Assembly (NCBI RefSeq): GCF_003918875.1
Contig: NW_025766414.1
Span: 434,001-498,000 of the forward strand
Direction: 5' to 3'
Source: Haliotis rubra
Taxonomy: Eukaryota
Length of the DNA: 64,000 nt
Of the stretch, positions 3,926-53,744 are shown one piece after another. Made by a program: the position numbers and the translations under genes. The notes beneath the pieces are model-generated. The model did not search any database and was not told where the DNA came from. It saw only the letters and a program-made list of their open reading frames with translations. Positions within the stretch are counted from its first letter, which is position 1. Each line of letters starts with the position of its first letter.

Positions 3926-5578
3926 GCCTCATTGATTAAAACGGGTAGAATTATTCGAATCTCGTTGATAAATATGGCGAAACACAAATTCAAAGATATA
4001 TGCTGAACAGGTAATTCATGTGACGTAGTATCTGTTGATTGCTTATAGGAAGTCGATCCTGAGTCATTACTACAGATCCTCACATTTAGCAGAATCGTCC
4101 CGAGGAAGGATATTAAGCTATGAATATTTAATGACAGTGTGTTCTCGATCTCATTGAAGTTATATATGAAGCTTGTTATACCCCAAGGCCTGGTTATATT
4201 TCGGAGGAAATTGTATTGTACAAATTTCATGTTTCATTATGCTTGTTAATCATCATATTCTTGCCTATAGAAATCATCTTTTCTGGAACTCTATTCGGTT
4301 ATATGACATGATATGAGAGCATTATTCCCATGGTGCATTGAAATATTTTTGTTTTATTACTCACAACAAATGATGAATCGTTCAAATAATGTTAGAGTTT
4401 AATTTGGAATATGTCTAGTATCCCAGGGGCTTCAGGTATGATAGAAGGAAACACAGGACTTCTGCTGGGCTTGCCGCTCCTTTCGGAAATATCACTTGTT
4501 AAAAGGTTACCATGTATGATGTTTTAAGAATAACATGACTTTATGACATCCACAAGAAGGTGAAACCCTGTTGTTTCCAGCAATGTTAAATCCACATTCA
4601 TTTTTACATTTCACAACTTTAAACCCCACGTGTGAATGACTGAAGAGACAATTGGCCCACCTTAATACGCTTCATGGAGACTCTTATCTATGTAATTATT
4701 CTTGAAATTAAAACATTAACATCTTACTTAAAATACTGTACATTAATCACAGTCACGCGATTATTGTGTACACTGAGCAAGTTGATAGTTAATGGAGTAA
4801 GACAGACATGGCATTGAGACTAGCAGCATTCCTCATTACTTCAAAATGTCTTTCAGCATCTTTGGATAATGAAAGATAAGCGTGTTAGAGTTCTGAATTA
4901 TTATTTCATCCGATTTGTTTATTCTAAAAGGAATAAATAATGGATAAATAATCGCAATGTGTGCATTTTAAGCCTCCACAGAGGAGTACAAGGAGAATCG
5001 CGATGGGCGTTCCACGAATGATACTGTCTGGTTATCATAGGTGATATAGTGAGTGAGTGAGTTAAAACTTAAAGTCACATCGGCACTATTGCAGCCATAT
5101 CGTGACAAGAACATTTTATATCAATATTCAAATCAATAAATGTATAAAGTAAAAACCTGTAATCGTAGGACAGTAAAACTACTAGAATATCACAGCTCTT
5201 AATTTAAAACTAGTACGCTATCATAAAAATATATCATGAGAGACAACAGTACAATATAAAAACAGGCTATAGATCACCAGCAACTGAAGGCTGATCACCA
5301 TACTAAGGACCATAGGGACTTACAGTACCCTTGCTACCTACATGGACCCTAGTTGGATTTACATCATCCCTTCAGCAGCCGGCGATTGTGGTCACATTCA
5401 GCCATAATTAAAATCACAAACATTCTACGCTTAAAATCCTGGTAAGTTTGAAGTTTTGGGACTTACATACCCTCTCAGTAGGACAATAATTTTACAATAC
5501 TTTAACCACCCTTGAGGGTACAGCCACTAACAATCTGAGTTATTTAGTTAAACTTCCCATCATAAAATATTTATCTAT

Positions 5579-7312
5579 TTACAAATCTGTTAACAAATCT
5601 AATTCTTTTAAAAATGCAATGATTAAATGAGGACTTATATTAGTTAAAAGATCCTTCATAGTTAGTGATTTGAAATAGATATCCCTTGTGATGGAATATT
5701 CAACACAGTCAAGCAGTACATGCTTGACCGTGATTCTTTCATCACAAGGGATACAAAACGGATGATCCTCACCTTTCAATAGGTACTCATGAGTATATCT
5801 TGTGTGGCCAAATCGACATCGTCGCATGATGACTTCTTCAAATCTGGACTGACAACACAAGTAGGTGTAACGAATGTAGGGTTTTATTTCATGTAATATA
5901 TTGATACCTACTTGGGTGTCCCACTTCTTCTGCATCAGATCACGGATATAAGATCTGATGACTTTATAAATCAGAGTATGGAATAAGAAGTGGAGTCACA
6001 GATTTGTTGAGTGCTGCTTTGGCAGCAAGATCGGCCATTGTGTTCCCAAAAATGCCAACATGGCTGGGTAACCAACAGATGACGATGTCGTATTGGTCAG
6101 TAGCAAAATCATTATACAATTCAATAATTTCTATTAAAAGTGGATGTTTGCAAGAAAGATTTTTAATAGCCTGAAGGCACGAAAGAGAGTCTGAAAAGAT
6201 TATATATTGTTTGTATTTGGGGTGTGTTTTAGTATATTTTAAGGCTGTTAGTATGGCGTTTGCTTCTGCTGTAAAAATAGAGCCGCTATTTGGTAGTCGA
6301 GAAGGTATTGTTTTGGATCCAATGATAGTGGCACAAGCAACAGCGCCATCATCCTTGGACCCATCTGTAAATAAGGATTTGTACGTATTATATTTACTTT
6401 TTAACTGATTAATTTCCTGTTTATATTGTAAGTCATTAGTTTCTGTTTTTTTAAACTGTGTCAGTGTTAGGTCAACGTCTGGCGTCACCAATTGCCAAGG
6501 AGGAGAAGAAAGAAGACGGGAAGGAGATATTGTTTCAAGATCAAAGCCAGCAGCAGAAATAAATGGTTTAATTCTGAGCCAAAAAAGGGAAGATTTCTTG
6601 TTGTATAAATCAGGGTTAGATTCGTTAGAATATAATTTTGTAATATGTTGTAATGATAATTTTATACGGCGTTGTGCAAGAGATGGTTCATCTGCCTCGA
6701 CATAGAGACTTTCAACAGGAGATGTTCTAAAGGATCCAAGACAAAGTCTTAGACCTTGGTGGTGGACAGAATCTAATAGTTTGAGGTTGCTGTTACAGGC
6801 TCCACCATATACAATAGAGCCATAGTCAAGCTTGGAGCGAACCAGTGATCTATATAGTTGAAGAAGGCTAGCTTGATCCCCTCCCCACTTTGAATTAGAA
6901 ACGATTTTCAATAAATCGAGTGCTTTCAGGCATTTAATACCTTAAGGATTTGATATGCGGAAGAAAAGTTAAAAGCGAGTCGAAATTAGACCCAGGATTT
7001 TGGCCTCTTTGACTGACTGACTGACTGACTGAGTTTGGTTTTACGCCGCTTTTAGCAATATTCCAGTAACATCACGGCGGCCTCTTTGACAACTTTGATA
7101 GGAGTGCCATTTAAAAACAGGTCTTGGTCTTTATGGGGTTTATATTTATTTTCTACAAAAGTGTATGCAATTAGTTTTTGATTTAGAAAATATAAAGCCG
7201 TTTTCAAGACACCATTTATTTATTTTGTTTAAACACAACTGTAGTACCCGTTCAATAGTATGCATATTCTTACCGCGACAAGAAATGTTAAAATCATCCA
7301 CAAAAAGTGATC
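5579..7312 (-). pseudogene. LINE ORF2 3' half: RT (SLFVDD) to RNase H and Cys/His motif
   Basis: SLFVDDFNISC, WGGDQASLLQLYRSLVRSKLDYGSIVYG, FTDGSKD, WLPSHVGIFGNTMAD, CIPCDERITVKHVLLDC; frameshifted. Confidence 0.92.
7014..7078 (-). mobile_element. 5'-truncated SINE stub inserted in LINE ORF2
   Basis: 12-bp TSD GGCCTCTTTGAC at 7002-7013 and 7079-7090; (CAGT)n tail; CCGCCGTGATGTTACTGGAATATTGCTAAAAGCGGCGTAAAAC matches the tRNA-SINE 3' end. Confidence 0.85.
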
Positions 7313-15835: not shown

Positions 15836-16949
15836 CTAAAGAGAGGAACGTACACCAAAATGTCATTACACTGTGCACAGATAGAGCACCTCCCCAATTA
15901 AGTTCAGGTTAAATGGGCACCTAAAGATACATCTGTTTATTTATCAGACTTACACAGCAGTTTAGCCCAAAGTCTATATTTTCTATTAACAGACAACCTG
16001 ACCAGATTTCGACGGTACGGATTAAACACAATGATCGAGGTTAAATTGCGTGTTGCAGCATGTATGACATACATGTTTACTGCCTTTGGATTCTGGGCTA
16101 AAGGTCTTTTAATGATGGTATATTAAAGACTTAAAAGATTGTACTCATGTTCTTTTGTTTGGTAATTTGTGTAATTCTACTTTCGGGATAGAAGAAGACG
16201 ATACCCAGATGATTCCAAACAGACTCAATTGCTCCGACGACCGCGATAAATTGGATCAGTCAGCAAGATAGGGGCAAATTAAACGTCACACCCACGGCAA
16301 ACCATGTGAAGATAAGACAAATCAAGACGATAATCAAAGTAAAAAGCACAGACCGTAGAGTTCCCAACACTCGCAAGGAGTTGAAGAACAGCAACAATCA
16401 CCACATTCGCGTACCACATTTAACGTATTGTACGTACATTTGTACTCGTCGAAACATTTCATGCTATCAATAACAAATATGTGGCTATTTATGTGTATAT
16501 TCATACAGAGAAAAAAAAAAGGTTTGTAATAATGATTAAGTACCTTAAATAGGTAACAGCGATAACTGTGGTAGTCGTTTCTGACAAAGAATGTGGCAAA
16601 AGAGGTCTTTGTAAACGCATGTTTTGGTTGTACAGGGAAAAGGAACAAAAAAACATTGCCAGCTCATGGAAAATCACCTTTAGCCAAGGATTATAAACAA
16701 ACCTTCGTTTCAAAGACGCATCGCGCTTCAGAAGCATTTTAGAAACGTTTCTTCAGAGCACACAACTAAAATCCCATCTGTCACACTTAATCTATCTCTC
16801 TCTCCCACGTCTTAATGAATTCAAACTGACACACGGATCAATTCTTCTCAACACTTCCATATTAAGAGCTTCACTGTTCGGCCTTTTAAAAGAAAGTTCA
16901 TCTTTTTACCGGTATCTGGCAGTAGCATGAAGAATAGTGCAACCAGTTA

Positions 16950-17400
16950 AGATTGTCTCGTGATCCTCATTCATCATCTGAACCTCGGGTGATCGATAGG
17001 CAACTTAGGGGGAACAAGCGAGTCAAGGATATTGTTCATAGGTTCATGCAAGCATTGCACTGTGGTGATGGCAGGAAGATAGAGGATATGAGAGTGTTGT
17101 CGTGTGATGTGAAGCATGGGAATCTGCTGATGCATGAGTAGGAGCGGGAGGGTTGGCGAGAGAGGGTTGAAGTGCGGGCAACTATGAAAATTAAGTCGAT
17201 GAAGGAGCTGTGTGGAGGAGGTGAGGGAGCGTGGGAGACCACGGACCTGTCACAATGGTGAGATGGGGCAGTTGTGGGTCAGGGGAGACGGTCTGTAGGT
17301 TGGATCAGTTTGGACAACTGGAATGGGAGCGGAAAAGGAGTGGGAATAGTCATGAGTTTACGTTATGGGCAAGAGAAGGTTTACAGGCACGGGATTGTCA
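16950..17400 (-). mobile_element. Highly decayed LINE (L2/CR1-like) endonuclease-region remnant
   Basis: Strong C-rich strand skew; SFIDLIF and NNILDSLVPPK-like peptides. Confidence 0.3.
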
Positions 17401-20074
17401 GTAAGGGGATAGGGAGATGATGTCGATTGTGAACCGGAATACAGAGAAGAGGGTGTGAGAGTGTGAACGGTCTTGGAATATATTGAGAGATAGTGTTCAA
17501 ATAAAATAACAAGAGAAGAGACGTTGTCAGGAGAGACATAGGGACAGAAAGTTTATTTCGGTTCATAGGCCATGAGATGCTTAAAACTAAACAATTACTT
17601 TACTTGGTCAAACTTGGAAATCCTTCTCTTCCTGGTTTGATTTAAATCAAATTAAATTTAATTATAATACACCATATGACGTTCGTTTGAATGTTTTTGC
17701 TCACCTTAAATCTCATTATTATGAAATGTCTTAAAGTTTTGTAAAACAGAGTTGCCAGGGTATGATTTTGTTAGTGCTCATTTATATAAATACCCAAATT
17801 TGTTAGTATGTACATCAACAGAAACATTTCAAAGAACAGCATGAAACTTTTATCTTGATTGAAATGTCCGCCCCTTCTGAACTGATGCCCTCGGCGCTTT
17901 GAACTTTATGGTCACTATACCACATTGACTCCGGTGTCTTCCGATCAAACCTTATATCCGAGCAGACACATGATACATCTTAATCATCCACTGAGGTGAA
18001 CGTCTATACCATGCAAGAGCTCGGGGAACAATGACACAGGATATTCTGGTGATACAAATGTTTGAAGGAGACGTATTGTGGCGATGCTAGACATGTTGCG
18101 TTTTGTCGTTAAACACAATATGAGAAATGTATGGCGTCTCAAAAGAACATTTCTTTTTAAGTCCGCGAGCGTCCAACATTACAGCCATATTCGAAATATA
18201 TAATGTTCTTAAGGTCTCAGGTACTGAAGTCATGGCTACTTCCGATAAGGTCTGTCTCCTATTAAACTTGGTTTGATTGTGCAGTTTATCTTTAACCCAG
18301 ACATATTCATCGACAGCGATATCATTATTTGCTGGCAAGATGCTTGATGTCAGGATGTGATGTAGGTAAATGTCGCTACATCAACAAACCGTTCCATATA
18401 AAACATCTATATTGGTATGTAATAGTGAAGCATATTCATCAAACTATCCCTGAACCGTAAAAATACCATTTCATTTCAGCCATTCCTGTAAGCCATGTAT
18501 AGATCTTTAATCACGAAGAATGTAGGCCTACGGCCCATGTTCACACAGATGATCAGTCAGTATATAATGTATATGACAAAGCAATCAACGAGTTATTCTG
18601 AAGCAATTTGCCTAATAAATATACATGGCCAATGCAGAAAGTTGGTTTAGCACACTTTTCATTTCCTCGTCATTTTCCTAAGAGCCACTAATATAATGCG
18701 ATATTTAAATTAAAAAATTTACTCATAAAAAAATCAACTTTCTAATCCTTTCAATAAATTTTATAATTAATGGAATCTCTGTTAATCCACTTTAGTCATG
18801 AAATATCAACAGCCTCCTACACATCTCGAAATGTAATATCACTTTGTCCCCCGGGAACACACGAACATAATATTTCAAAATCAAGAGAGACAATTAGGTT
18901 TACATCTGTACAATCGATTGGTGTTTGGACAACCGATTTGCAATTGCCTGCCGAGTGAGAAGGTTGTTTGTCTTCTGTTTTGGACATGGCGTCAAAACAG
19001 TGATTAATTACCTCTCTCCCAACGCTGCATTGGTTGTGGCAAGGCACGGTCTGGAATGAAAAAGGGCAACATCAATGTCTTTAAAGCTACCTCCTCCTGA
19101 TCACGACGCTTGCATTGCGTAGGTCAATACCACTTAGTCGACTTTGGCAAGATGTTGACCCACAGTGAGATAGGTTAGCTTGCCCCGTGAAGCTTATTGA
19201 CAGCGGGATCTAATAGACACTCCACGGATCTGATACAACATCGCACATGGAAAGACTCGCGCCAGAAAAATGTAATTTAACTCTGTAGAATGTGTAATAC
19301 AAGACACATTAACGTCTTTTCATTGTAACATCTGACACAAATGAATACCTTTGGTCCTCTCTGACTGCAACAAACCCATGCAGGATGCCAGCGAATAACC
19401 TTATTATGTAGCTGGTTTGTAAAATATATATGACTGTTTTCAAGAGATAAGGACAATGCTACAGAGGTATCCTTACATTGAAGGAAAACACAACGTCAAA
19501 GCTGAACATTCCTTGTCAGCATTACAAGACAACACAGCAGTAGGAGAGGTTTTACACTTAGCGATGGACAGGATGAGCCATTCCTTTATTTATATCACCA
19601 CATTTGTATTATTTGATATCTCTATTCATTTCAAAAACATACTTAATGAAGGGAAATATGATACCTTGGTGTTAGAATTTTCTAAAAACATTTTTCTTCT
19701 GTTCTAACAGGTCGTTACTTTGCGTATTGTATGTAATGGCGTTTTGTTACAGGCATGTGTGTCCACTATCTGAAGTTACACTTTGGGATTATACAAAAGA
19801 TTAACCGTAATTATTTCCTTGAATATATATTTGTGAATACATAGCGACATCTACAGACACTCATTACTTACGAAATTTTGAAAGGGTCATGTGATGTGAA
19901 GTTATGGGCAAGATGTGTAAAAGATTCACAGACATGGAAGTCAAGTCATATTTGTGTTTCCATCTTTAAGCAAATCATCCTGTCTTAACTCCGTCCTAAT
20001 AAGCAAGGGCAAACGTTGTCATCATACCACTAACAGTCAACGTCACGAACCGTGAATCTGGGCTGTAAAGTAAA

Positions 20075-20135
20075 TGAGTAAGTGTAGTTTTATACAGCTT
20101 CTAGAAATATCCCAGCAATATCACGGCAAGGGACG
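20075..20135 (-). mobile_element. tRNA-SINE 3' stub
   Basis: GAGTAAGTGTAGTTTTATACAGCTTCTAGAAATATCCCAGCAATATCACGGC matches the SINE tail consensus. Confidence 0.5.
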
Positions 20136-21226
20136 GCTGGTTAGTAATATTAGGATGCAAATATAGGTGTTCAATTTCGAACGCTAATCTACAACGAGGC
20201 TTTATCTGTCATATCCTGATCGCGATTCTCTTTGCTGTGATTCGAGGCTGTTTTGTTGAGGCGTAAAAGAACATTCGCTCACTCTTCACAGAAAACACTA
20301 TCGTTAGCTGCTGTCGGCTCTGTCTTTGTTGAACTGATCAAATAGCTAATAGGCTCTGGTGTCCCGTGACCCCTCGGGATATTATCAAACACTTCATATG
20401 AGCGATGAACGAAGAGCAACAGGCGTTTCTAAATGGATCGGATATTTTGAAACATATCAGCAAATAGATGAACTTTTTGGAAAAGGCTTTACAATGATGT
20501 TGTTAATATGCAAGTGTTGAGAACAGATCCTTTTGTCTGCTGAGATTCCAGTCAGAGGCGTTTTGCATTGATTTGAAAGAACCATTGAAAAATAAATCTC
20601 ACAAGTAAAGAAACTCCAAGTCCTTTTGAAGTCTTTGGCAAAAAGTGAGGTGTGCGTTTTGCCGTCTCAATCACATGGCGCTCGTGCCTCGGATTCAGTC
20701 TAACATACACAACCTATCATTCTAACCGCAAGAATAAAAACAACCACTTACACAAATTAGCAGTTTCTGTTCGTTTCAATTGCATCTTGAATAATGGTTG
20801 AACGGAAACGTGAGTCATCTATTTCAGTTGTTGTCATCTCTACAAAGGATAATAAAATTCATGAGTTTGTAGGAAAGTTTGAGGGTCGTTTGTCGTTTGG
20901 ATGCCATAAACACTGAGTACTGAATATAATCCTAAGTCTGAGGGTATTTGTTAAAAACATAACCAATAAAAATATTAAGTTGAAAATGTTCTTTATTTTC
21001 ATTTTGATATTCATTTTGCATGGTTCTTTAAAAAATCTATATCATCGTCGTAGTAAGGAAACAATATATATGAGCATACATGTACATGATTTCCTTGTTA
21101 TACACATGCGCCTTATAGTGAGAACGAAATTATGTTCAATAACTGTGGTTGAAAATGGAATGAATCTGACACAAAAAAAATTTGTTAAATGTTTTCACCG
21201 ACTAGCTTTTTAGTTGTTTGGAAATA

Positions 21227-22481
21227 TACTGAGTCAAAAAAGAAACTTCACATTCTTCCTTCAGGGCACTATGAAAGAACAAGAGATGGTAAGATGGTTA
21301 AATTGTTATTATTTCATTGCTGAGATCTGTGTGATGGACTCGATACACTGACAGTGCCATAATCAGTTCCATTAGGCTACACCGCCGTTCCAAAACATGG
21401 GTATACAGAATGTCAAGTCACAAGAATAGAAATGCGAAATTCTCAGTTCAGTATCGTGTATGGCCGCCCCGCGCATTCACCACTGCCAAACACCGTCTCC
21501 TCATCGACTGTCTGATGCTTGTGAACACGTGGTTGGGGATTCTGCGCCATTGGTCTTGCAAGGCAGCGCCAAGTTCCTGCAAATTCTGAGGTTGGTTCCT
21601 AAGACCACGAAGCCTTCTCCCAAGTGCATCCCAAACGTGCTCTATTGGATTAAGGTCAGGGGACCTCGATGGCCAGTCCATAACGTTGATTACAGCGTTT
21701 TGAAGGAAATTTCGTGTCAACATCGCGGTATGCGGCCGAGCATTATCATGCTGGAACTGTAGACCTGGGCCATGAGCCGCCATGAAAGGAACGAGTTCAG
21801 GGGTGAGCACCTGGTCGCGGTAAGCAGCAGCTGTGAGATTTCCACGGATGACTAGAAGTCGGGAACGCCATGCAACTTCCGCCCCCGAATCTGTCGACTT
21901 CCTGTACACAGCATTGGGCATACCGTTCACGACGTCGTCTCCAGACTCTATGCCTGCCGTCCGCGAATCTGAGGGTAAACCTGGATTCATCGCTAAAGAC
22001 GACTCGATTCCAGTCTCTCTGGGTCCATCGGAGGTGACGTTGGGCCCACAGCAGACGTTGACGTTGATTAAACGGCGTCAATATTGGCCCACGATATGGA
22101 CGTCGAGAATGGAGATTGGCAGCCCGCAACCGATTTCGAATGGTCTGTGAGGACAGTCGACCTCTAAACATCTCAGCCCTAGTTCGTGTAGCCGGCAGAA
22201 ATCTGTCACGTAGGTGACGTAGGACGATTTGACGGTCTTCTGCTCGTGACGTCACACGTGGACGACCCGACCTTGGGCGATCAGAAGTGGTGCCAGTTTG
22301 TCGTAGACGACCTCGCAAGTCATACACAGTACGACGGCTGCATCCCATTGCTCTTGCGACGTCAATAACTGATCTTCCCGCTTGCAATATGCCAACGGCA
22401 CGTTCACGTTGCACATTTGACAATCGTGGCATTTCAAGTACCGTTAGAACTGTGATACATTTGAAACCTGAACCCCTCAAA
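21227..22481 (-). mobile_element. Tc1 element A (one TIR; 5' end replaced by element B)
   Basis: TA + TACTGAGTCAAAAAAGAAACTT TIR at 21225-21250; near-complete transposase; no partner TIR found downstream. Confidence 0.9.
21448..22432 (-). pseudogene. Tc1-family DD34E transposase with one frameshifting deletion near FGGGS
   Basis: MPRLS..HTH..RSGRPR, VFSDESRF, QHDNARPH then 34 residues to E in SPDLNPIE, ends GGHTRY; ORFs 21797-22480 and 21448-21990 join by frameshift. Confidence 0.95.
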
Positions 22482-23611: not shown

Positions 23612-23964
23612 TATTACAGCCGGCTATACGTTATCATCGGGCTACAAACAAAATACTTTTAAATGCAAAATAATGTGAATGGCGGTTGTTAGTGATAGGG
23701 TAGAATATGCTTAAGCGTTTCAGAACACCTTGTGTTATCTCTGATTTTGCAGTACAGCATAATTATATGCAATTTGTACCGCTAATTTGCATTTTAAATG
23801 AAACGGAAAAACGGCAATGATTCTTTTTTTTCAAAAGACTTCTAGAATGCCGATCAAACAATACATTAATGTACATGTGAGTTGTTGTGCAGTAAAACGT
23901 GCTCTTCGTCAGATAATAATATTATTATTATCAACAAACAAACCTGTCGTTGAACTGTATAGTT

Positions 23965-34586: not shown

Positions 34587-36460
34587 TAGTATTTATTTGT
34601 GAATTCCCCCGTCATGTCCAGCAATATACCATCAGCGCCACCTTATGGCGTCTACATTTCCCAGTTGGTTGGATACTTTGGAGCATGTATGCTTTATTCA
34701 TAAGGGCATTTGCTTACAGGTAAGCTGTCAAATACAGCCAAACGATTGAAAGGAACGTGAATGTTTGAAGAGGGCGTTAAATCAATGCAGTTTTTTTATC
34801 AAATAAATGACTTGTGAGTATTAGTGATGATTCTTTGTAGATGCCCTGTTTTGAATTTCTCCAGTATCATTGTTGTAATAGTTACCAATATTTCCGCAGT
34901 CTCACAAAAATTGATATACCCAATCGTAATTTCGTTACTGAAGATAAATGTCTCGTCTGTTTTTCACGTTTTCAATCCCTGAACATATGTTACCATGGCA
35001 ATCAAAAAGAAGATGTACAAGTGTTTCCTGTTGACGAAGCATCCACGGTACATCATGGGGCCTCTATATCACCTTGCGTCATCTTGGCTGCAAGAAAAGA
35101 ATCTGCTTACTATTGATATGGCCATCATTATTAAGGTGAACGCGTATTTTGCACTGAATGCACTCAGTGCAAGTACTGAAGAATCCCCGATATGACTGAA
35201 TTTGAAAGCAAATAGAACTAAACGTATTGAAACGATGCAGTCAACAGGAAGTCCGGGATCCAATCAGTCCTCTGTGTGCCGTCTTACAAAACGTTGCCCG
35301 CTACAAACCATTACCCAACCACCAGCAATGCCTCGGAGATGAAACCACAAAACCACAAAGGTACAAAAGTTACAAAGTTAAACTGAAATGGTGCTCATTT
35401 ACACCTCCCTGCAATTCTCCTTGACCCAAAACCAAAACTTAGATTGACTATATTGTCAGATAGTATCGTTTATCAGAATCATTTGTACAGCTTATATACA
35501 TATGTCTGCAATATTGTCACCTGCACAGAAGAGAATAGACGGAGAACAATATTTTAGGCCAGATGAAACCCAAGTGACGGATTTCTGTTTCTCCGCATTG
35601 TTTGAGTTTGTCAGTACATACTTTTTGCTGCTCACCTTAATCTTACTTTCTAACATTTATAAATATTTTCATTGTATGATTAAGAAGTTCCGTTTGTGCA
35701 GGACAGAGCACCTGCCCACGACCTCTGGTCGAGCCTATGTGTAGTTAATGATGTTCCCTGCTGAGTTCTATTGAGGGATCATCTGTTATCATGTGTTGTT
35801 ACCCACTGGTTAATATTCATGATGAACGCCCGTGATTAACTAAAAATGACCATGTACAACAATCCGCCAAAATCAACAACTGATGCCTTCAAGACGAAGG
35901 AGAAACACCCATTTCTGGTTCGGTTTAAATTAGTTCCTCTTTTTGATTACACATATAGATGACATTCTTGTACGTATATTATTGACATTCCAGTCCCGCA
36001 AATATCAGTACTCAGTACTTTATTCCATTTCAAATGCATTCTTCTTTATTACTCACCATATGGAAGTAATATGTGCACGTCGATTTGATTCCGTTCACTA
36101 ACAATCGTATTTTCATTTAATGGTACAAGTGATTAGAAAGAAGGTAGATCTCCACCATGTTCCGATTGCAGTTAATCAAACAGTCCTTAGATGCGGCGAA
36201 GTATATTTTTCGTGACATTAATTCAAGCAATATTTTTTCAACGCTGCATGTACATACACACATAACTATATATATCTAACCACAAAGTTTCTAATTACAC
36301 TTCAGCAAGAAATCCATAATAGCAATTCTAAGTTTACACAAAAAATATACTGAACCACAAAAGAAATGTCGCACTGATGGGGGTTTCTTAAAAGCACACA
36401 CTTTAATTCACTCTAATTAACAATCAAAACGGAGGACTGAGTTCAAACTAGACAATTATG

Positions 36461-37064
36461 ATGTCTTTCAGTGGCATTTAGAAGTTGTACATTGATGTCC
36501 AAGATATTTTTATGGATTAAACTTCTTTTTAATTTCTCTCACGACGTTTCGAGACCATTCCAGGTCCCTTCATCAGGTGAACTGGCAGTTATGACTATGG
36601 CGTCGTCACTATGACGTCATTACTGAGTTATGACGTCACAGTGCAAGTGACATCACAGTACACTAGGGAGAGTACTGTATAAGTGAGTTTGGAGCGTTAA
36701 TTACATAATGATGAAAATTCATGCTAAATAATAGAGTTGAAAGTTGAATTGTCAATACACAACAACTGCTAATTACACAAAAGTTACTTGATAGCAGGCT
36801 TTCCAAAAAGAATAGTAGACTCGTTTTTCTAAAGTTCATCAAAAGTTAATCAAGAGGTCCCACGCACTTGGCAGGTATACACCTTGATCACGATTCATTG
36901 CTGGTTTATGTCTCCTTATCTCGACAGCCTCCTGTAGTTTTCTCCGACGCCAGTCGTCGTTATTTCTCGAAAGCACCCTGATATCATTCCACATGATTAC
37001 ATGACTTGGGTTATTTGCCTTGTGTTCCGATATAGCTGACTTATCATTTTGTTTGCATACTGAC
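36461..37064 (-). mobile_element. 5'-truncated Penelope-like element (GIY-YIG C-terminus + pLTR) nested in Tc1 C
   Basis: 10-bp TSD GACAATTATG at 36451-36460 and 37065-37074; KSAISEH..WRRRKLQEAVEIRRHKPAMNRDQG..WD. Confidence 0.9.
36539..36580 (-). ncRNA. Minimal type I hammerhead ribozyme in Penelope pLTR
   Basis: UCAC-CUGAUGA-A-GGGACC(UGGAAU)GGUCUC-GAAAC-GUC-GUGA: intact core, 6-bp stem II, loopless palindromic stem III. Confidence 0.8.
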
Positions 37065-38491
37065 GACAATTATGGTTAACACATTTTCGGGAAACACATT
37101 TAAAGTTCACACAAACAAAATCATCAAAAATGGTACCATTAAGATACCCCAAAGACAGTATCGTGTGTGGCCTCTATGGGCATCGATGTAATCGTTGCAT
37201 CGTCTGTACATGGAATGAATTAGCCGGTCGATGAAGGTCATACGCACTTGGGTCCATACTCTGCGAAATGCCTGCTCGAGTCTAGCCGTAGTTGTCGGCC
37301 TTTGTTGGAGGCCATTCAGTCTTCTTTGAATCTCGCCCCACAGATGTTCTACTGGACTTAAATTCGGACTGAGTGCACGATTTTGTAGGGTTTGGATACC
37401 ATACTATCTCAGGAAGTCCAATGTTGCTTGGCAGTGTGGGCACGACCGTTGTCTTGCTGGAAGATGTGATTTCTATAACGTCGAAAATGTGGTACAACGT
37501 GGGGTCTTATGACTTTATCAATATAACGAGCAGCAGTCATGTCATTTCCTCATCCTGGACCAAGATTCTGGAACACCACGGTAACTAACTTGTTCAGATT
37601 GATTGCACCCCACACTATGATGCTTGGACCACCCCATGAGTCTCTTTCAACAATACACTCATTGGAAAACATTTCACCACGCCCTCGCCATACTCTCACT
37701 CTGCCATCGACTGCCGAAACACAATATCGGCTTTCATGAGATAACAGCACAGTTCTCCATTGTCGATAACGCCAGTTTCGATGCTGAGTTGCCCATTTTG
37801 GTCGGTTTGGGCGGTGATGAGCGGTGAGGACAGGACTACGATATGCTCTGTGACAGTAGAGGTTTCTCCCGCGCAAACGTCCACGCACTGTATGGGCACT
37901 GACGGGTCTGTTGTGAGTCCAAATGGTCTGCCGTGCTGCATATGGTTGCGCGCAGCCTGCCATTCTTGACGTTGTGATGTTACTGAAGGTCGCCCACTGC
38001 GTTGACGGTCTTGAATGCTGTTAGTGACCTGAATACCACCCCTGCTGTCCTTACATGAACATTAAAATGATTGGCTACCCTCCGTGCAGTCTGGACAACT
38101 AGCAACCGTCCCACGACTTGGTTACTCTGATTTCTCGTAAGACGTGGCATGGTGGTTGTGTCAAAACAAAAATGATTTCAGGTGGGTTTGGGACTCGCTT
38201 TCATTGGTAGGGTTGTCACGACATGCACGTGCATTTTCATTTTCACGAATGTCATACGGAACCTCGGTGCGTTTGATCGATATGCTTTTTCATCAGAAAA
38301 CACACTGATGTTGGTAATAACTGTTAATTTGGATTGAAAAACATGTTAAGAAAATGGTACAATCATAATAAAAATACCACCTTGCAAGAACATTTTGCAT
38401 TTGGTTTTGAAAAGCGACGTTTCTTTTGTGGTTCAGTATATATATGTAGGTATTCTTGAATTGGTCATCTCATCTGGGTACATAGCAATAT

Positions 38492-38724: not shown

Positions 38725-40292
38725 AAATTGGTGCTCGGGCAACCACGGTTTAGCTGCTGTAGTAGGCTATAAACCACAGTCTCGATTTGACGGGTTGGTA
38801 CATTTTTGATTGGATGTACAGATCAGATAGCACTTCATTTTCACGGATATATCTAGGCACTGGTGAACGTGCCTGTAATCTCTGTTGCAAACATGTGGGT
38901 AGTACATGTAATCAATGTCCGTGATTCAGATTAACTAATGATGACTGATCCACGTTAAATCCACCTGGGCACAAATTGCATGTTTTCGTAATAAAGTTTG
39001 GTAATATTTGTAATTCGGAATGGGAAGACTAGCGTTGATTTGTTTTCAGTGATGAAGGGGAGTGTGAACACATCAATCTTATTTCAGCTGGACATGTAAC
39101 ATTAATTAATAAAGGATGTCACATTCACTCAAGGTCTATTGATACTGTCCATCACGAGATATGTTGTCATACAATAATCGTATTATTATTTCAGCTGGAC
39201 ATGTTACATTAAGAAATAAAGGATGTCCCATCGACACTATGTCTGTTGATACCGTTCATCACAAAAATATATACAGTAGTCATCCAATAGTCGTTTTTGA
39301 GACATCCCCTCCTTATGGCACGTACAGACCTACTGCTTTAAATGAGCAGGGTTTTTACTGAAATTTGATCGCTTTATCAGTTTAGGAACACAATTTGAGC
39401 CGCGTAATTATATATGCCCCACTAAGAGGCAGTAGGCAAATAGAATAAATTTCTTTGTAGGTGTCGAGAAACATTACATTGATTAAAATGTGTTTTTTGC
39501 TAAAACATGCTGAGCAAAGTTCCAACAATGCAAAGCCAATCCTCTGATGCTCACATTGCAAGTTACACTTTAAGATTACTAAAAGCTTCAAGAACAATTC
39601 TCACCAATTCCATCTATCTATTGATAGTGCCCCAACCTATTTTCAAAGCACAGATTGCACATTCGTAACCGAAAGTCAGACCAAAGCATCGGAACAATTC
39701 ATTATGGTCCGACCTCAGTCATGAATGCTTGCTTTTGCTGTATGAATGCATTCGTTTGTTCTAAGCATAAGTCCTCTTGTTACATAAGTTATATAACATC
39801 CTGGCTACAGTGTGGAGGCAGGAATCTCACAGATACCGGTTATACCCGACAGTGGTGATCACTCCTGTCCCGCAGTTACCGTTTATACTCGGCAGTGGTA
39901 TAGGACATATAATGATGGAAAGATTGTGGCCACAGAACGGACTAAGAGAAATAATCCTAGAATATTTTTCCAGTATAAACAAGTGTATTTGGGTGAATCA
40001 AATACCAGTATACTTCACAACTACAATTGCTGTTTCCTTCCACAAGGACAAAATATATTTCATTTGCACACATGTCACAAATATAAACATTACAAACTAA
40101 GATAGACAATAATAACAAACTACAGTGCGTTATTCTTTTCCAAATCCGTTCAACTAATCACAGTGTTTCGTTTACCACTTTGAAACCCAAACTTCCTTGG
40201 AGCGGATTGGATGCTAAACTTTGTCTCATATGCTAATATGGTGCTGAGGCGTGTACTTTGCATGGTCATGATATTAACCAAAACATTTATTG

Positions 40293-40521
40293 TAACATAT
40301 GTTATATTTGGGATTACACTTTCTTAGTAAAGTACAGATTCTAGTACTTGCGTTGGGTTGAGTCCCATGCGGGATTCGAACTCACACCCTCAGAGTCGGG
40401 CACCTAATCGCCAGCACAACCAAAAAAGTACTAGAATCTGTACTTTACTAAGAAAGTGTAATCCCAAGTATAACATATGTTACATTTGACCACTTTCTAA
40501 AATGGCATTGTGTATTTCAAT
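40293..40521 (+). mobile_element. Short element with 59-bp inverted repeat, tRNA-like B-box segment and Penelope-like 3' tail
   Basis: 10-bp TSD ACATTTATTG (40283-40292, 40522-40531); IR 40291-40349/40426-40484 with 1 mismatch; minus-strand GTGAGTTCGAATCCCGC T-arm; tail CACTTTCTAAAATGGCATT. Confidence 0.75.
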
Positions 40522-41529
40522 ACATTTATTGAAGAAAACATGCATGACAAATACACACAGTCGTTCACATTGGCTGAGTTCAGTAATGTTTCAGATGTCT
40601 CAATATCCTCCGTTTGACAGTTAAATAAACATAATACTTAACACAAGTCACCCTAAAAACAGTTGTCACAGGTACAGGCAATAATAGCTTAATTACACGA
40701 AAACCTTTGTGCCATATGCGATTCACTACGATTGCTGTGTTAGAAATGCCGTTTCTGCAACTAACACATGAGTCAATGTTAGTTTTATCTTCATTCGAAA
40801 TACTGGCAATTGCACCTAAGATTCGTTTTTAACCGAATTTGTCCTTTACTTTTAGTGCCGCCTCTATTAAACATTCCGTGCAAACAGATAGTTTTTAGAA
40901 CGTATCTACAAACATGGCTTGGAGGACAGTTTGATAATCATCATACCACGATCCCGCATTTAGTATTTGTACAGAGGTTAGTAATCAAAGTGCATTGAGT
41001 GGAAAGCAGTTATTACATAGAAAGTGGAATTCCATCAAAACATTTAATTATGTTAATTTCAGTGACCAATTCATAAATGTTTCCACCGTTAGTTTGAAAC
41101 ATTTATACGCCCACTCGAACCAAGACTGGCTCTTCCGTTGCGTTGATACTTTCAAGTCATCATCACAATTCGCATCTGTCTATTGCAATGTGGTGATTTA
41201 TAGGTTGAAACAAGAAATTTAAACCCAAATTTGTACTTACAGAACTAACTTATCAAATGATTAAATAAATGAGATCAATGATTAATTCACAAATTATATT
41301 GAGCTCGCGTTTTCGCAAACACCTGGTATCAACGCTATCTGATAGTGTTTAATGAGTTAAAAATATAGTCAGACATCTTCATTCGACTTAAACCAGAGAA
41401 AACAGAATATGGAAAGGGTCTGGGTCGTTGATATTCATTAGCTGTCTCAAATATACGATTCAGAATATACCATGAGCATGTATTTGTGAATCACGATCCA
41501 ATAGCGATGCCACCAGTTCACAAGAAGGT

Positions 41530-44476: not shown

Positions 44477-47400
44477 TTTTTTTTTTTTACCATTTTTTTA
44501 CTTATTGAAAGGTACAGTACATGTGGTCAACGTATGACATTGATAGGTACAATTGTGCTGATATACAAGATTACAAAAGCAATCAATGATATTTCTATAA
44601 AAAAGTCTCAAATGGCATCAGATACCATGATGCCATATATATATGANNNNNNNNNNNNNNNNNNNNNNNNNNNNNNNNNNNNNNNNNNNNNNNNNNNNNN
44701 NNNNNNNNNNNNNNNNNNNNNNNNNNNNNNNNNNNNNNNNNNNNNNNNNNNNNNNNNNNNNNNNNNNNNNNNNNNNNNNNGTACGTACGCATATGTAAGT
44801 ACGTATGTGTATGTATGTATGTACGGGTACGTATATTTGTGTATGTATGTAGATACGTATGAATGAACAGGTGGATATGCATTCAATTTGTGTCTATATG
44901 AAATAAGGATGGCAGACAAAATCATTCATCCCTCTCCTTATAGTGCTGGAAAAGTGTATGTAGAGATGACCAAAAGGAGAAAAATGTGTCAACACCACAA
45001 GAGGAAGAATAAACATATCTTGTAATGTCATAATACTTAATTATCTCCCTTTTCACATGACTGATAAAGGGTACAGTTGAATTTCTGCTGTGTCTAAAGA
45101 TAACTTGCTTTACAACAAGTATTATGGCATTAATTGGATTATTATTTTTTCCTCTAATTCCAAGTAAGACATTCTGTTTTGTGAAATATAACGGAATATT
45201 CAAGTCAGTTAAAAGCCATGACTGGAGGTTTTTCCAGATATCTTGCACAATTTCACAGTCCCAAAATAGATTGGTAATTGATTCAATGTTATATTTACAG
45301 AAACTGCAAATGGGGGAGTCTATATACTTGATCTTAAACAAAAGCTGTTTTGTAGGTAGAATATTATGGATAATTCTGTATTGTAACCATCTTAGATCAA
45401 TACTATAGGTGCACTTCCATGGGATAATATTAAATATTTCCCAGTCCTTTGGTAGGAGATTTAGATTCAAGCTATCCCAGTTTTAATTATAGTGTTCTGT
45501 TTTTAATTTAGAGCATAGGAGTTTTTCATAAAAATATTTGCTGCCTTTTTAACTGAACTTTAGTTTAGACAAATTGAAAGGGTATGTCGGTTTAATGCTC
45601 AAAGTTGTAGAATGTGAAATATTTATCTTTAATAATTGCTTGTTTGACCCCTTCAAAGGTGAGGAAATTTGTTCTGAGTTTATATAGATCTATCAAGTCA
45701 TCAAAGGATAGAAATTTTCCTTCTGCTGTCAACATGTCAGATACAAACATAACTCCCTTGTTGTACCAATATTTATACAAAATAGGTTTGTTATGAACCA
45801 ATATGTCATCATTACACCAGATAGACTGTGACTGGATTTCAAATTCACTTGTAATAGTATCTTTTTGCTTAGATGGGAACCAAGCCCAAGCAAGTAACAC
45901 ATCCTTCCAAAACTGATTGGTTAAGGTTGGAGTAACAACATTTTTAATATAATTGCTGTCTGCAGACCATAGGTAAATTTCACATGTAATCTTTCTAAGA
46001 AAAAGATAGTCCCACTTATTTGGTTTTTGTAATAGTTTTCTTACTCATCCAAGCTTTTGGGCCGCAATTGTCTCTTTGATTTTTGGTACCTTTAATCCAC
46101 CATGTTTGGGGAGACATGTAATAATGTCCCTTTTAACTTTGTCTGGTTTTCCTTTCCAAATAAATCTTAAACATAGCTTTCGAAGCTTATCTAAGACATG
46201 ATCTGGAGGGTTTTGGAGTGAAGTAAATAAGTGATTTAATTTTGGAAACAGGAGTGATTTCAAAACTGTGTTTCTTCCAAAGGGAGTGAGTGTTCGTGCT
46301 GACCAGGTATTCATTTCTTTCGTAATTTGAGACAATTTATCGGAATAATTTTTTTTCAACCATACTTTCTAAATCTATGTCAAAATGAATACCTAAAAGT
46401 GTAAATTCAGTATGAGACCAGTCGAAATTCCAGTCTTTGCATAATTTTAGTCTTGATCTCTTTTTTGATCCTATCCAAATTAGCTTTGTTTTTTCAATAT
46501 TAATTTTTAGCCCAGAGAATATTGCAAAGAATTGTAATGTATTTAAAGCAGCATAAAGACATCTTTCAGAACCATCCAGTGTCATCGTCGTATCATCAGC
46601 AAATTGTGACATAATGTATTCAATATTATCAATTTTTATTCCTCTTATATACCTATTATTTTTTATCATTAAGGCCAAAATTTCTACACAAACCAAAAAA
46701 TATATAAGGCGATAGAGGATCCCCTTGACGACAGCCCCGGGTTATTTTAAAGAAGGGTGATGCAAAGCCATTAACCAATACACTGGATTCAATATCATGA
46801 TAGAAAAGGTTTACCCATTGAATCAAATCTGGTCAAAAGTGATAGAAATTGAGAACATTGAGAATATATTTCAAGTCAACCGAGTCAAAAGCTTTCTCAA
46901 AGTCAATCAATAGGAGTAGTCCAGGGATTTGATATGTTTCGGATCTGGATCTTAAAGACCCTTGGTGTGAACAAAAGTTTGGTGAAAGGAGATATACATG
47001 GCGACAGCCAACCCCTTTGAAACAAGCTAGACTTGACTTCTTTTTAATCTCTCATCAATGCTATCAGACATTAGACACTGTGATATATCACCTAGTTTAG
47101 GATCTGATCACTCCCTCATAGAGTTATCACTCACACTTTCGTGGTCGAGGTTTCTGGAAATTTAATAATTCCTTACTGCATGATAGAAAATATGTGGAAA
47201 TTATTAAATCCACAATAAAATCTACACTTGATCAGTACAAAATCAATGATGAAAATAACGACAATAATTTAACATATTCTATTGATGATCAATTACTATG
47301 GGAAACACTACTATTAATGATTAGAGGGAAGACAATTTATTATGCCTCAACTATGAATGATCTTGGCGAATTCGTGATTAAATCTCTGAATTTTGCTTTT

Positions 47401-47656
47401 CGAACTGGAAATTTATCTGTCTCTCAGAAACAGGGACTTATAACATGTATTCCTAAAGGAAATAAGCGCAAAAGGTTTTTAAAGAACTGGCGACCCATTT
47501 CGCTTCTAAATATCTCATATAAAATTGCTGCCGCAGCCATTGCCAACAGAATTAAGCCTATTCTTCCAAGTATTATCAGTGAAGACCAAAAGGGCTTTAT
47601 CATTGGAAGATACATAGGAGACTAGACTAATTTATGACCTGATGGAACATACCGAA
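44477..47656 (-). mobile_element. L1/Tx1-type LINE, 5'-truncated with 5' inversion (46942-47656 on the + strand)
   Basis: 15-bp TSD AAATACACCTTCCTT (44462-44476, 47657-47671); poly(A) tail; minus strand IDFEKAFDS, GCRQGDPLSP, SQFADDTT, CSFC..ESITNLFWDC; plus strand QARLDFFL, GSDHS, WKFNNSLL, NWRPISLLN. Confidence 0.95.
44647..44780. other. Assembly gap next to a (TATG)n-like microsatellite in the L1 3' UTR
   Basis: Run of N followed by GTAT/TATG repeats. Confidence 1.
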
Positions 47657-51730: not shown

Positions 51731-53397
51731 TTTTCTTCTTTGAGTGGCATTTTTAGAAGTTGGAAGTCAGATAGAACAAGTATATATGGATGACAACTTC
51801 TTTTATTGTAAAGCACGATGTTTCGATACAGGTTCTTGTATCGTTTTCAAATGAGAATGGTACAGTGAGAGAAGAGGTGATATATAAAAAGAAGACTAAT
51901 TAACAAGGCAAGGCGGAATAACAATGTGATGATAACAAATAAAGGGATAACAGATGATTACATAGATAAACATAGAGGCCAGTGGAAGCCAATGATACAC
52001 AGAGCTTAGAATTGTACACGATTAACAATATGATGATAGTGAATAAAGGGTAGCAGAGGACAACAGGGTTACACATAGAAGTCAGTAGAGGCCAGTAATG
52101 TTTATACAAGAGGCTAGGGTTGATTAATGAGCTCATCGTATGCATTGGGGATAAAGTAACCTTGATCTCTATTAATCAGTGGTCGGTATCGTTTGATGTT
52201 AATTCCTTCAGTTATCTTGCGTTTGGTAAAGTCTGATTGGTTTGTAGCGAGGATGGTGAAGTCAGTCCAGTTGATTTGGTGATTGGGATGAGTTGCTATG
52301 TGGTCTGATATGGCTGATTTCTGGTCCGATTTGATGGTTGAGGTCTGATATTCCTTGATTCTGGTGTTGACGGGCCTGGATGTTTCTCCTATGTATGAGT
52401 GTCCACAATTGCAGTCAATTTTGTAGATTACGCTTTGGGGTTGGGTTTCTTGGTTTGTGGGTATTTTCTGCCATTGGCCTGCATGAGGTTGTTGATGGTG
52501 GCGGAAGTTGAAAAGGTGGTATTTATGCCTGCTTGTTGCTTAAGGAGCCTGCTGATCTGGTGGGAAGGTTTGCCGATGTATGGGATGGAGATCTTTATAG
52601 GGGCAGATTCAGGTCGAGGAATTTGAGTAGTAGATGGTGATAATGTAGCTGCAATTGTCCTGTTCACTAACTGGGGTGGGTAGTGGTTAAGGCTGACAAA
52701 TACTCCTTTCAGGTGGTTGATTTCGTCATGGAGATTCGTAGAACAGATGATCTTAGCTCTTCTGGTAAGGGTGGAGATGATGCCTGACTTCACTCGTGGA
52801 GGGTGGTTGGACTGATAGTGGACATACTGGTTGGTGTGAGTAGGTATCCGGTATACAGATGTCTGAAGTTGGTTGGAATCGGTGCGGGATACAAGGACGT
52901 CTATATATGGAATGGGATCTGGTTGTTGGTTACAGTCTCCGTGCTGAATTTAACTCTTGGATGTTCAGGTGGAAGGTGATGTGAGGAGGGCTTTCTCTTC
53001 TAGGTCTGACATATATATCTCAGTGAGGATTGATGATAGTGGTGAGCCCATAGGTAGTCCATGTATTTGTTCATATATATCGTCACCCCATGTGAAGTAA
53101 GTGGAGTCGATGCAGGCTGAGGTGAGGTTGATGATCATCACATTGTTAATCGTGTATACATTCTATGCTCTGTGTATCATTGGCTTCCACGGGCCTCTAT
53201 GTTTATCCCTGTAATCCTCTGTTATCCCTTTATTTGTTATCATAACATTGTTATTCCGCCTTGCCTTGTTAATTAGTCTTCTTGTATATATCACCTGTTC
53301 TCTCCCTGTACCATTCTCACTTGAAAACGATACAAGAACCTGTATCGAAACATCGTGCTTTACAATAAAAGAAGTTGTCATCCATATATACTTGTTC
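51731..53397 (-). mobile_element. Penelope/Poseidon-type retroelement, 5'-truncated, with inverted pLTR
   Basis: 13-bp TSD TAACTGGAATATT (51718-51730, 53398-53410); ~240-bp inverted repeat 51772-52012/53160-53399; RT GLPMGSPLS and YRIPTHTNQY; GIY-YIG VIYKIDCNCGHSYIGETSR; INRDQG. Confidence 0.95.
53318..53357 (+). ncRNA. Variant minimal hammerhead motif (U3-A8) in the inverted pLTR; second copy 51814-51853 on the minus strand
   Basis: CAC-UUGAAAA-C-GAUACA(AGAACC)UGUAUC-GAAAC-AUC-GUG; same position in the pLTR as the canonical motif at 36539. Confidence 0.55.
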
Positions 53398-53744
53398 TAA
53401 CTGGAATATTAATTTGTTAAAACCGCGTTAAATCTGACTCACCTGCCCACCCACCTGAGGGCTGTCCATCCAAACAGCTGAATCCCACATGCATACGCGT
53501 ATACTAGTTGTAAAATGATTTAAAGCTAAATGACTACCACGTTTTGCACATGCTCGTTATTACCAAATAAATAAATAAACGAACACTTCATATCAGGCTA
53601 TTATTTACTGTGGGACCACTAGGAATAGTGGAGGTAGATTTGGTAGAGAAATTGTCAAAAGAGCAGCCTGGGGCGAGTTGTAACCTTTCGACGTTTCTTC
53701 ATATTATAAGCGTAAGTTTTGGTTTTCCGTGTATTAATGTTGAT

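Follow-up and report, generated by a model that had tools for sequence, protein, structure and literature searches.

A fold-back insert in Haliotis rubra as a probable copy of a Pol III-headed SINE mobilised by Penelope-like elements

The insert at 40283-40531 of the analysed window (64,000 nucleotides of Haliotis rubra contig NW_025766414.1, positions 434,001 to 498,000 of the forward strand) raises the question of which machinery moves a short element that pairs a Pol III-type promoter with sequence resembling the 3' end of a Penelope-like element (PLE). SINEs are defined through their dependence on LINEs, and PLEs form a third, poorly understood class of retrotransposons. A preliminary description of this DNA offered two answers: a non-autonomous Pol III-type element using the reverse transcriptase (RT) and GIY-YIG endonuclease of Penelope, or a PLE family whose pLTR had captured a tRNA promoter. 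The first of these fits best with the layout of the insert, a covariance model of PLE ends, the predicted helices, the ends of the family and the position of an ATG. We therefore regard the insert, with a probability of about 0.75, as a truncated, fold-back, dead-on-arrival copy of a Pol III-headed abalone SINE mobilised by PLEs.

The insert proper spans 229 bp (40293-40521) and is bracketed by exact 10-bp direct repeats of ACATTTATTG at 40283..40292 and 40522..40531, as the preliminary description had read them. This target site duplication (TSD) can be extended to 14 nt with one mismatch, and the chance of a direct repeat of at least 10 bp in this geometry is about 8e-4 (162 of 200,000 random placements within the window). 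The proposed order of an inverted copy, a sense copy and an unpaired tail of about 37 nt also proved correct: arms of 59 nt at 40291-40349 and 40426-40484, 98% complementary and separated by a loop of 76 nt, are followed by a tail that has no inverted partner. On the minus strand, the inverted body (40293..40349, inverted repeat I1) lacks a tail and stops at the site where the tail would start, and direct reading together with the family consensus identifies 40350..40418 as the 3' two-thirds of a Pol III-type head plus a linker, also part of the inverted copy. The B box of the insert, GAGTTCGAATCC on the minus strand of 40372-40383, has the sense orientation relative to the inverted arm that had been claimed for it, and the copy is 5'-truncated short of the A box. 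The inverted and sense copies meet at ACCAAAA (40419..40425), directly after the departure from the family consensus at 40418/40419; this junction probably preserves part of the linker CAACCCAAC, and the joining probably took place through some 2-4 nt of microhomology.

The sense body follows on the plus strand (40426..40484). It contains a hairpin that pairs 40426-40431 with 40440-40445 and corresponds to hammerhead helix II of PLEs, as well as AGAAAGTG at 40451-40458, the 5' strand of a long-range stem whose 3' strand, CACTTTCT at 40491-40498, lies inside the one-sided 37-nt tail (40485..40521, plus strand). The tail also carries the motif CACTTTCTAAAATGGCATT, with its ATG, at 40491-40509, near the TSD as previously described, and both Penelope ends that had been quoted for comparison with it were found in their places. 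Direct reading revealed neither a poly(A) tract nor a terminal microsatellite in the insert, and no T4 run inside the element. The flanks are AT-rich, and a 3-bp ATT can be read on either side of the arms.

A BLAST search of the element against the window, which is LINE-rich and holds several LINEs, returned no other copies and no other similarity. In four abalone read sets, the element belongs to a very high-copy family rather than being single-copy: each run has 16,000-20,600 contigs that match it, and the summed family depth, across four organisms, is 1e5-1e6 in comparison to about 9-50 for the flanks, all of these figures being drawn from contig summaries rather than from aligned copies. 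The base-by-base reading given above is that of one complete copy, 40293-40521. According to the family consensus, the full element comprises a head of about 100 nt, a body of about 60 nt and a tail of 37 nt, giving a unit of about 200 nt. Past 40418 the consensus continues into the rest of the head and reaches a perfect A box, TGGCTGAGTGG; the complete A and B box head looked for among copies thus exists in the family, and the truncation of the A box suggested earlier for the insert is borne out, as the insert lacks this box. Lacking an A box, the copy at 40293-40521 cannot be a source copy. The family B box, GGTTCGAATCC, is likewise perfect (consensus GGTTYGAATCC), and the two boxes are spaced about 63 nt apart start to start, which is long for a tRNA.

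Upstream of the sense body, family members carry the 3' end of the head (...GGTTYGAATCCCGGATGGGACTCAACCCAAC). Downstream, the tail consensus continues to ...TGGCATTGTGTATTCA and then gives way to unrelated AT-rich flanks; the tail belongs to the family as a whole, and its end position is fixed. Body ends fall into two classes, one that runs into the tail (244-392 contigs per run) and one that stops at the tail start and is followed by unrelated AT-rich DNA (159-254 contigs per run), and with or without the tail these ends lie at fixed family positions with AT-rich flanks. Opposite-strand joints, by comparison, occur at varying positions in other family copies.

A tRNA origin of the head would be indicated by its A and B boxes together with a segment resembling a T arm, and with the B box in the insert and the A box in the family consensus only, the element has an internal Pol III type-2 promoter. 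Against it, ARAGORN called no tRNA in the window or the Haliotis loci, nor in a composite head at thresholds down to 70%. Rfam searches of the window, the element and a related head gave no hammerhead, nor any match to a tRNA with E values of up to 10. The best Rfam match, to the plant microRNA precursor hairpin MIR844, was below threshold and spurious. What remains of a tRNA is just the promoter boxes and the T-arm-like segment. In its other properties the element resembles a SINE, being a short, non-coding, highly repeated unit of about 200 nt flanked by a 10-bp TSD. Within the LINE-rich window, no LINE shares the 3' end of the element as would be expected for SINE2; the 3' end matches those of PLEs.

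Descriptions of PLE insertions include a 5' copy in inverted orientation and, on one side, a tail of 30-40 bp (PMC8557442), and this tail has been called a signature unique to PLEs (PMC11167929). Synthesis by the PLE RT begins at two internal sites that lie next to each other; the two strands are both cut and extended, and AT-rich targets are favoured (PMC11167929). The window contains a reference insertion of this kind at 51731..53399 (minus strand), with an RT fragment and a GIY-YIG endonuclease, an inverted 5' arm at about 53180-53399, a 41-nt tail at 51731-51771 and an 11-13-bp TSD, ACTGGAATATT; its GIY-YIG domain was not detected by Pfam and was found by an ESM Atlas feature search. A copy of this element, 93-94% identical and of equal layout, is present at L002:9421-11071, L002 being one of six further Haliotis loci (about 125 kb) collected around PLE ORFs. 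In a second PLE 3' end in the window (36458..36577, minus strand), the tail motif is accompanied by a hammerhead core of canonical form (CTGATGA...GAAAC).

Four Haliotis PLE insertions (51731-53399 in the window and those in L002, L003 and L006) share an inverted 5' arm, a 34-41-nt one-sided tail and an 11-13-bp TSD. The likeness of the insert to the Penelope element, first noted on layout, extends to its sizes in all four of these, and the insert combines an inverted, 5'-truncated copy with a one-sided tail in the 30-40-bp range. Covariance model and HMM matches to the minus strand of 40293..40349 break off at the model position where those to the tail-less arms of real PLEs also end. The ATG of the tail motif, whose possible role as a PLE start codon had been put forward for checking, is the annotated ORF start of the PLE in one H. 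asinina locus (L005). The six loci contain PLE ends and no further complete SINE copy, only fragments and relatives: L003 has a related head, L006 a decayed relative and L001 a tail fragment truncated where the locus ends.

The relationship of the SINE body and tail to PLE ends was assessed with a covariance model, R1, built from nine PLE ends with the SINE left out; its calibration was shortened, and its E-values are therefore rough. R1 matches the SINE at 40426-40509 with 23.8 bits (E 0.002 for a search of the entire window), beginning precisely at the first base of the body, and ranks it fourth in the window behind three true PLE matches; the PLE end at 36458..36577 scores 92.6 bits. Local alignments of the SINE with individual PLE ends exceed 4,992 to 4,997 of 5,000 dinucleotide shuffles (p about 1e-3), and the summed alignment score exceeds all 2,000 of 2,000. 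A sequence-only HMM of PLE ends gives the SINE a weak score (5.8 bits, E 1.5), so that much of the significance of R1 stems from structure, and we accordingly do not claim homology on sequence alone. In MAFFT alignments the SINE is 46-53% identical to any sampled PLE end, and none of the sampled ends comes from a partner PLE with a near-identical 3' end.

The structural agreement is more detailed. Hairpin 1 of the SINE forms six of six pairs and stem 2 eight of eight, five of the pairs differing from the common PLE pairs in both of their bases; compensatory change has thus preserved the two helices. Covariation is supported across the PLE ends, both helices appear in the minimum free energy fold of the SINE, as well as in those of four PLE ends out of five that were folded, and the loop closed by stem 2 measures 31 nt in the SINE versus 30-35 nt in PLEs. 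The PLE helices retained are thus the helix II hairpin and the 8-bp long-range stem around the tail start. The hammerhead that characterizes PLE pLTRs is not retained: a 17-nt gap removes GAAAC and a strand of helix I, and the SINE head sits where the CUGAUGA of the hammerhead would lie. Judged by similarity, the body and tail of the SINE derive from the PLE 3' module, a stretch that begins at hammerhead helix II and ends shortly after the ORF ATG; the covariance model, the shuffles and the helices all argue for homology to the pLTR/ORF-start region, with the HMM weak.

From these data we infer that the element is mobilised by PLE machinery in trans. A master copy would be transcribed by Pol III, and with no T4 run in the element, transcription would read through into the flank. 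The PLE RT/GIY-YIG protein would then bind the 3' module of this RNA in trans, and its endonuclease would make cuts about 10-13 bp from each other in the two strands of an AT-rich target. Reverse transcription primed by each strand would start at one or the other of two fixed internal sites separated by 37 nt, and the two 5'-truncated cDNAs would be joined head to head, leaving inverted arms, a one-sided tail and a 10-bp TSD.

The alternative that survives best, although we consider it improbable, is the second option of the preliminary description, in which there is no separate SINE and the sequence serves as pLTR and 5' UTR in an autonomous PLE family with an acquired tRNA-like Pol III promoter, the short copies being 5'-truncated PLEs. 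PLE insertions are indeed mostly 5'-truncated and very numerous (PMC8557442), the module lies directly upstream of the ORF in PLEs and contains its ATG, and the family consensus spans just 30 nt, stopping short of the region upstream of the head. However, none of about 10 sampled PLE ends has the head; all have hammerhead sequence in its place, and the hammerhead core that all of them keep is deleted in the SINE. The same head is also joined to an unrelated body in another Haliotis locus (L003:1465-1560, minus strand). Such mixing and matching of heads and bodies is typical of SINE modules.

Still less probable is an ordinary tRNA-type SINE mobilised by a LINE, its 5' inversion arising by twin priming or snap-back and its resemblance to PLEs by coincidence. 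Several LINEs are present in the window, the sequence-only similarity to PLE ends is weak, and LINE-driven insertions can show 5' inversions, as known from L1 twin priming. Twin priming, however, inverts an upstream part of the RNA and would not duplicate 59 nt of the 3' part. The absence of a poly(A) tract or terminal microsatellite, the single fixed site of tail-less ends family-wide and the lack of any other BLAST similarity within the window also count against a LINE, while PLEs are matched in the covariance model, in both covarying helices and in the lengths of loop, tail and TSD. A DNA transposon of the MITE or fold-back type, with the 59-bp arms as its terminal inverted repeats and the 10-bp repeat and the tail as incidental features, is very unlikely despite its long, near-perfect arms, AT-rich flanks and the ATT on both sides of the arms, since a one-sided tail lies inside the true TSD (p about 8e-4), opposite-strand junctions vary in position between copies, and past 40418 most family members continue into the head, on one side only, rather than into a second arm, so that the arms are no constant property of the family.

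The PLE-mobilised SINE shares much with EN+ PLEs of the Penelope, Poseidon and Neptune type, namely the inverted 5'-truncated copy, the one-sided tail of 30-40 bp, a TSD of about 10-13 bp and AT-rich targets (PMC8557442; PMC11167929), as well as a 3' module with the helix II hairpin, the long-range stem and the ATG motif. Unlike them, it has no RT/GIY-YIG ORF and no hammerhead core, its upstream part is a Pol III A/B-box head, and its copy number is of the order of 10^4. With tRNA-derived SINEs (SINE2), among them the MESC and LP SINEs published for abalones (PMC4758252), it has in common its short, non-coding and abundant nature, an A/B-box head, TSDs, a 3' part common to an autonomous retroelement and a head reused with other bodies. 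It differs from SINE2 elements in that its 3' part matches PLEs rather than a LINE, and in its fold-back copies, optional tails and a head that is not called by tRNA finders. At the end of the published Haliotis MESC SINEs stands (CACCT)n (PMC4758252), and no such terminal microsatellite is found here. Metazoan retrozymes and the SINE-like SM-alpha elements of schistosomes (PMC7229834, PMC8490949) are also small, non-autonomous and thought to depend on PLEs, but they are defined by an active type I hammerhead, an arrangement in tandem units and their circular RNAs, whereas the abalone element has a Pol III-type head and has lost the hammerhead core, and the copy at 40293-40521 is dispersed, single and flanked by a TSD. 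Non-autonomous Chlamys PLEs such as MRC1 of Chlamydomonas (PMC8557442) similarly share a 3' end with autonomous PLEs; in contrast, these have pLTRs and head-to-tail arrays, and no head from a small RNA gene has been reported for them (PMC8557442).

The wider reading, to which we incline with less assurance, is that abalones harbor a class of SINEs, found in several Haliotis species at about 10^4 copies per genome, for which a PLE and not a LINE acts as the autonomous partner, and that it consists of a Pol III head and a minimal PLE recognition module made up of the hairpin, the 8-bp stem and two internal RT start sites. We found no published description of a tRNA-headed, PLE-dependent SINE. 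If correct, a Pol III-headed SINE with the 3' module and insertion scars of a PLE would extend the SINE concept to PLEs, and the family would define in nature the minimal RNA required by a PLE reverse transcriptase. Only about 100 nt of PLE sequence are kept, with two covarying helices bracketing the tail start, which points to the RNA features that the enzyme needs; this retained module may serve as a small substrate for biochemistry. The family would also offer an independent natural readout of the two-internal-site initiation by PLE RT described in vitro (PMC11167929). In the annotation of repeats in mollusc genomes, tens of thousands of such fold-back copies may go under a wrong label, whether as MITEs, as microRNA-like hairpins or as unknown repeats.

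Several searches contributed little. The bare 10-mer TTCTAAAATG was rejected as evidence, with two matches versus 0.32 expected and two reached in 5 of 100 shuffles. A fixed-spacing pattern for the PLE motif gave no matches because the number of A's varies between copies, and a protein-database search for more copies by way of a spurious antisense ORF produced no candidates. The exact pattern of the head-linker junction was matched nowhere in the genome, viral and metagenome contig collections scanned, as expected since none of these are animal genomes, and a LINE RNase H piece used as a protein query for abalone loci returned only distant non-Haliotis matches. Contig evidence suggests that the insertion at 40293-40521 is missing in one species and common to another.

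The SINE copy at 40283-40531 consists of a 229-bp insert (40293-40521) flanked by two exact copies of ACATTTATTG. When the same geometry was placed at random across the window, 162 of 200,000 trials had a direct repeat of at least 10 bp; the 10-bp target-site duplication (TSD) given in the preliminary description is therefore real and encloses the tail. The insert's inverted arms, 59 nt each (40291-40349 and 40426-40484), lie 76 nt apart and are 98% complementary, with a mismatch at 1 of 59 positions, and the right arm is adjoined by a 37-nt tail (40485-40521) without a partner on the left, in keeping with the inverted copy, sense 3' region and unpaired tail of ~37 nt described earlier. From 40425 down to 40293, read in the minus orientation, a T-arm/B-box-like segment, GAGTTCGAATCC, is followed by a short linker and by the same body as that of the sense right arm (40426-40484). 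The insert is an inverted copy, with a partial head and a body but no tail, fused head to head with a shorter sense copy made up of body and tail. This is the one complete family copy covered by base-by-base inspection; it lacks an A box and is inert.

Statements on the family are summaries of Logan contigs (four runs, four organisms) placed on 39800-41000 of the window, with consensus sequences derived from those portions of the contigs that extend past the window copy. Between 16,000 and 20,600 contigs per run were placed on the element, at a summed depth of 1e5-1e6 versus ~9-50 in the flanks, so the element is not single-copy; its family size is ~10^4 as an order of magnitude, contig count and depth not being copy number. 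Behind 40418, most copies continue as CAAAGTCAGCCGTCTAACCCACTCAGCCAC, and in reverse complement this continuation carries TGGCTGAGTGG, a perfect A box. The window's inverted copy is therefore 5'-truncated within the head, in line with the poor or truncated A box described earlier. Upstream of 40424 most copies read ...GGTTYGAATCCCGGATGGGACTCAACCCAAC, so that ordinary sense copies have the head upstream of the body. Beyond 40501 the copies run through TGGCATTGTGTATTCA and afterwards into unrelated AT-rich DNA, and the tail and its terminus are thus features of the family. The outer end of the body falls into two classes, one breaking at 40291 (244-392 contigs per run) with the reverse complement of the tail as its consensus, the other breaking at 40293 (159-254 contigs per run) and passing directly into unrelated AT-rich DNA. 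The family is thus built of head, body and tail modules, and its 3' ends fall at two fixed points separated by 37 nt. In other copies, opposite-strand joints and skips lie elsewhere along the element, and since these vary in position the arms are not a fixed feature of the family, which excludes a MITE with fixed symmetric terminal inverted repeats.

The window also contains a Penelope-like element (PLE) on the minus strand (51731-53399), with RT-type pieces that include a weak RVT_1 match and a GIY-YIG domain (Atlas score of 0.95 to eukaryotic GIY-YIG clusters); its YRIPTHTNQY... region is one known from PLE RTs. H. rubra proteins are up to 91% identical to a PLE piece from the window, and a copy in H. 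rubra contig DNA is 93-94% identical to the window PLE, which confirms blacklip abalone as the source of the window. Six Haliotis loci (L001-L006) were fetched around homologous ORF fragments, and four PLE insertions, that of the window included, were readable end to end. Their tails and TSDs measure 41 nt and 11-13 bp in the window, 37 nt and 12 bp in L002, about 34 nt and 12 bp in L003, and 36 nt and 13 bp in L006, compared with 37 nt and 10 bp for the SINE copy. All four carry an inverted 5' arm, the terminus of which is the exact start of the tail. This layout is the published PLE structure (PMC8557442), and it is explained by the behavior of a PLE protein that in vitro cleaves and extends both DNA strands and has two neighboring internal start sites for reverse transcription; what lies between these sites is the tail (PMC11167929). 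In H. asinina, a PLE end module (L005:8360-9045) leads directly into an annotated 193-aa ORF starting at the conserved ATG (8464), an arrangement that the preliminary description had suggested looking for. In these abalone PLEs the 3' end of an insertion thus lies only ~12-15 nt into the ORF of the next unit; for an anole element, RT initiation in vitro was located 111-118 bp into the ORF (PMC11167929).

The likeness of the SINE to PLE ends extends to sequence and structure. Local alignment of its body and tail with each of four PLE ends gave z values of 4.0-5.0, with 3-8 of 5,000 dinucleotide shuffles per end reaching the observed pairwise score and none of 2,000 reaching the summed score; a sequence-only profile of nine PLE ends matched the SINE weakly (5.8 bits, E 1.5 over 190 kb). 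Every PLE end has a hammerhead helix II hairpin and an 8-bp long-range stem, AGAAGUUG/CAACUUCU, enclosing a 30-35-nt loop with the tail start, and the two helices recur in minimum free energy folds of the SINE and of four PLE ends out of five. Covariation lends support to both predicted helices, with 84.9% of cells paired versus 72.4% in shuffled and 26-39% in slid alignments and changes on both sides in 14 of 14 pairs, in an alignment that was itself fitted to the model. A covariance model built from nine PLE 3' ends, the SINE left out, was searched against the whole window with filters off (the short calibration makes its E-values rough). It matched the SINE at 40426-40509 with 23.8 bits (E 0.002 over the window; 0.006 over all 190 kb), directly behind three true PLE matches, in an alignment that opens with the body's first base. 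In the SINE the first hairpin forms 6 of 6 pairs (AAGUAC/GUACUU versus the common PLE CGAUAC/GUAUCG) around a loop nearly identical to that of the PLEs, and the second stem, AGAAAGUG/CACUUUCU, forms 8 of 8 pairs and closes a loop of 31 nt. The tail motif earlier matched to Penelope termini proves to be the 3' strand of this stem with the conserved ATG. A 17-nt gap relative to the PLE ends removes GAAAC and a helix I strand, leaving the SINE without a hammerhead. Among the sampled PLE ends, none was identified as the partner of the SINE family.

In the composite head the A and B boxes are spaced ~63 nt apart. ARAGORN called no tRNA in the insert or, even at relaxed thresholds, in the composite head, and Rfam returned for the insert only a sub-threshold microRNA-precursor match, attributable to its hairpin (40318-40457, MIR844 of plants, 27.6 bits versus a gathering score of 70); such fold-back insertions could seed spurious hairpin-RNA annotations. 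A head 87% identical to that of the SINE, with A-box-like and B-box motifs, occurs in H. rubra at L003:1250-1560 (minus strand), where the head proper (1465-1560), likewise not called a tRNA by Rfam, is joined to an unrelated body of tandem ~40-nt units, ctgttccgtgttggatggtc..., possibly a further SINE family with a common head; mollusc SINEs are known to shuffle modules in this way (PMC4758252). Since both boxes are present, the tRNA searches are negative and a related head occurs with another body, we call the head Pol III type-2 (tRNA-like); the tRNA origin proposed earlier is a possible one, suggested by the boxes and a T-arm-like segment.

The A and B boxes would drive Pol III transcription. 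The sense strand of the element contains no T4 run, so that transcripts would be expected to run on into flanking DNA, as would suit an enzyme that starts internally. A PLE protein may then bind the two-helix module in trans, make staggered cuts on both target strands and prime from both, and two truncated cDNAs could have been joined at short microhomology near 40417-40419. The SINE classes of RepeatMasker and Dfam are not known to list partners other than LINEs. Full-text literature searches, in a collection that lacks Repbase reports among others, found no PLE-dependent SINE with a tRNA-type or Pol III head; non-autonomous Chlamys elements (PMC8557442) are among the nearest published counterparts.

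The insertion at 40283-40531 may be shared with one of the organisms, organism B, because contigs there enter the element from both flanks. In organism C, one 3.7-kb contig follows the left flank as far as 40282 and picks up again at 40679; the 127 nt in between are too few to accommodate the element, which at the level of a contig summary is consistent with an empty site. No clean family copy was found in ~62 kb of H. asinina DNA, where L006:16290-16400 holds a decayed relative with the 3' end of the head, GGACCCGGAATGGGACTCAAC, followed by a body-like stretch with GAGAAAGTG. At the end of H. rubra L001, a 20-nt segment (21348-21367, minus strand) matches the beginning of the tail of the SINE, TTGATCACTTTCTAAAATGG, at 95% and is probably another copy extending just beyond the locus.

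A short PLE end at 36458-36577 (minus strand), with CTGATGA ... GAAAC as the canonical core of a minimal hammerhead, stays below every Rfam gathering score, indicating that Rfam misses such minimal PLE hammerheads. Weaker covariance-model matches of 16-32 bits (window 38325-38444, minus, and 23797-23866, plus; L003:3020-3141; L004:7582-7717) retain GAAACGUCGC or an ATGCC...CAAA motif and are probably decayed PLE ends, which would make PLE relics dense in these Haliotis genomes. The window is also rich in other transposons (5967-6911, 21451-22480, 37553-37963 and 44925-45470, all minus; 47194-47622, plus), comprising a LINE piece with RNase H, two Tc1/mariner-type transposase remnants (HTH_Tnp_Tc3_2, DDE_3) and further RT fragments.
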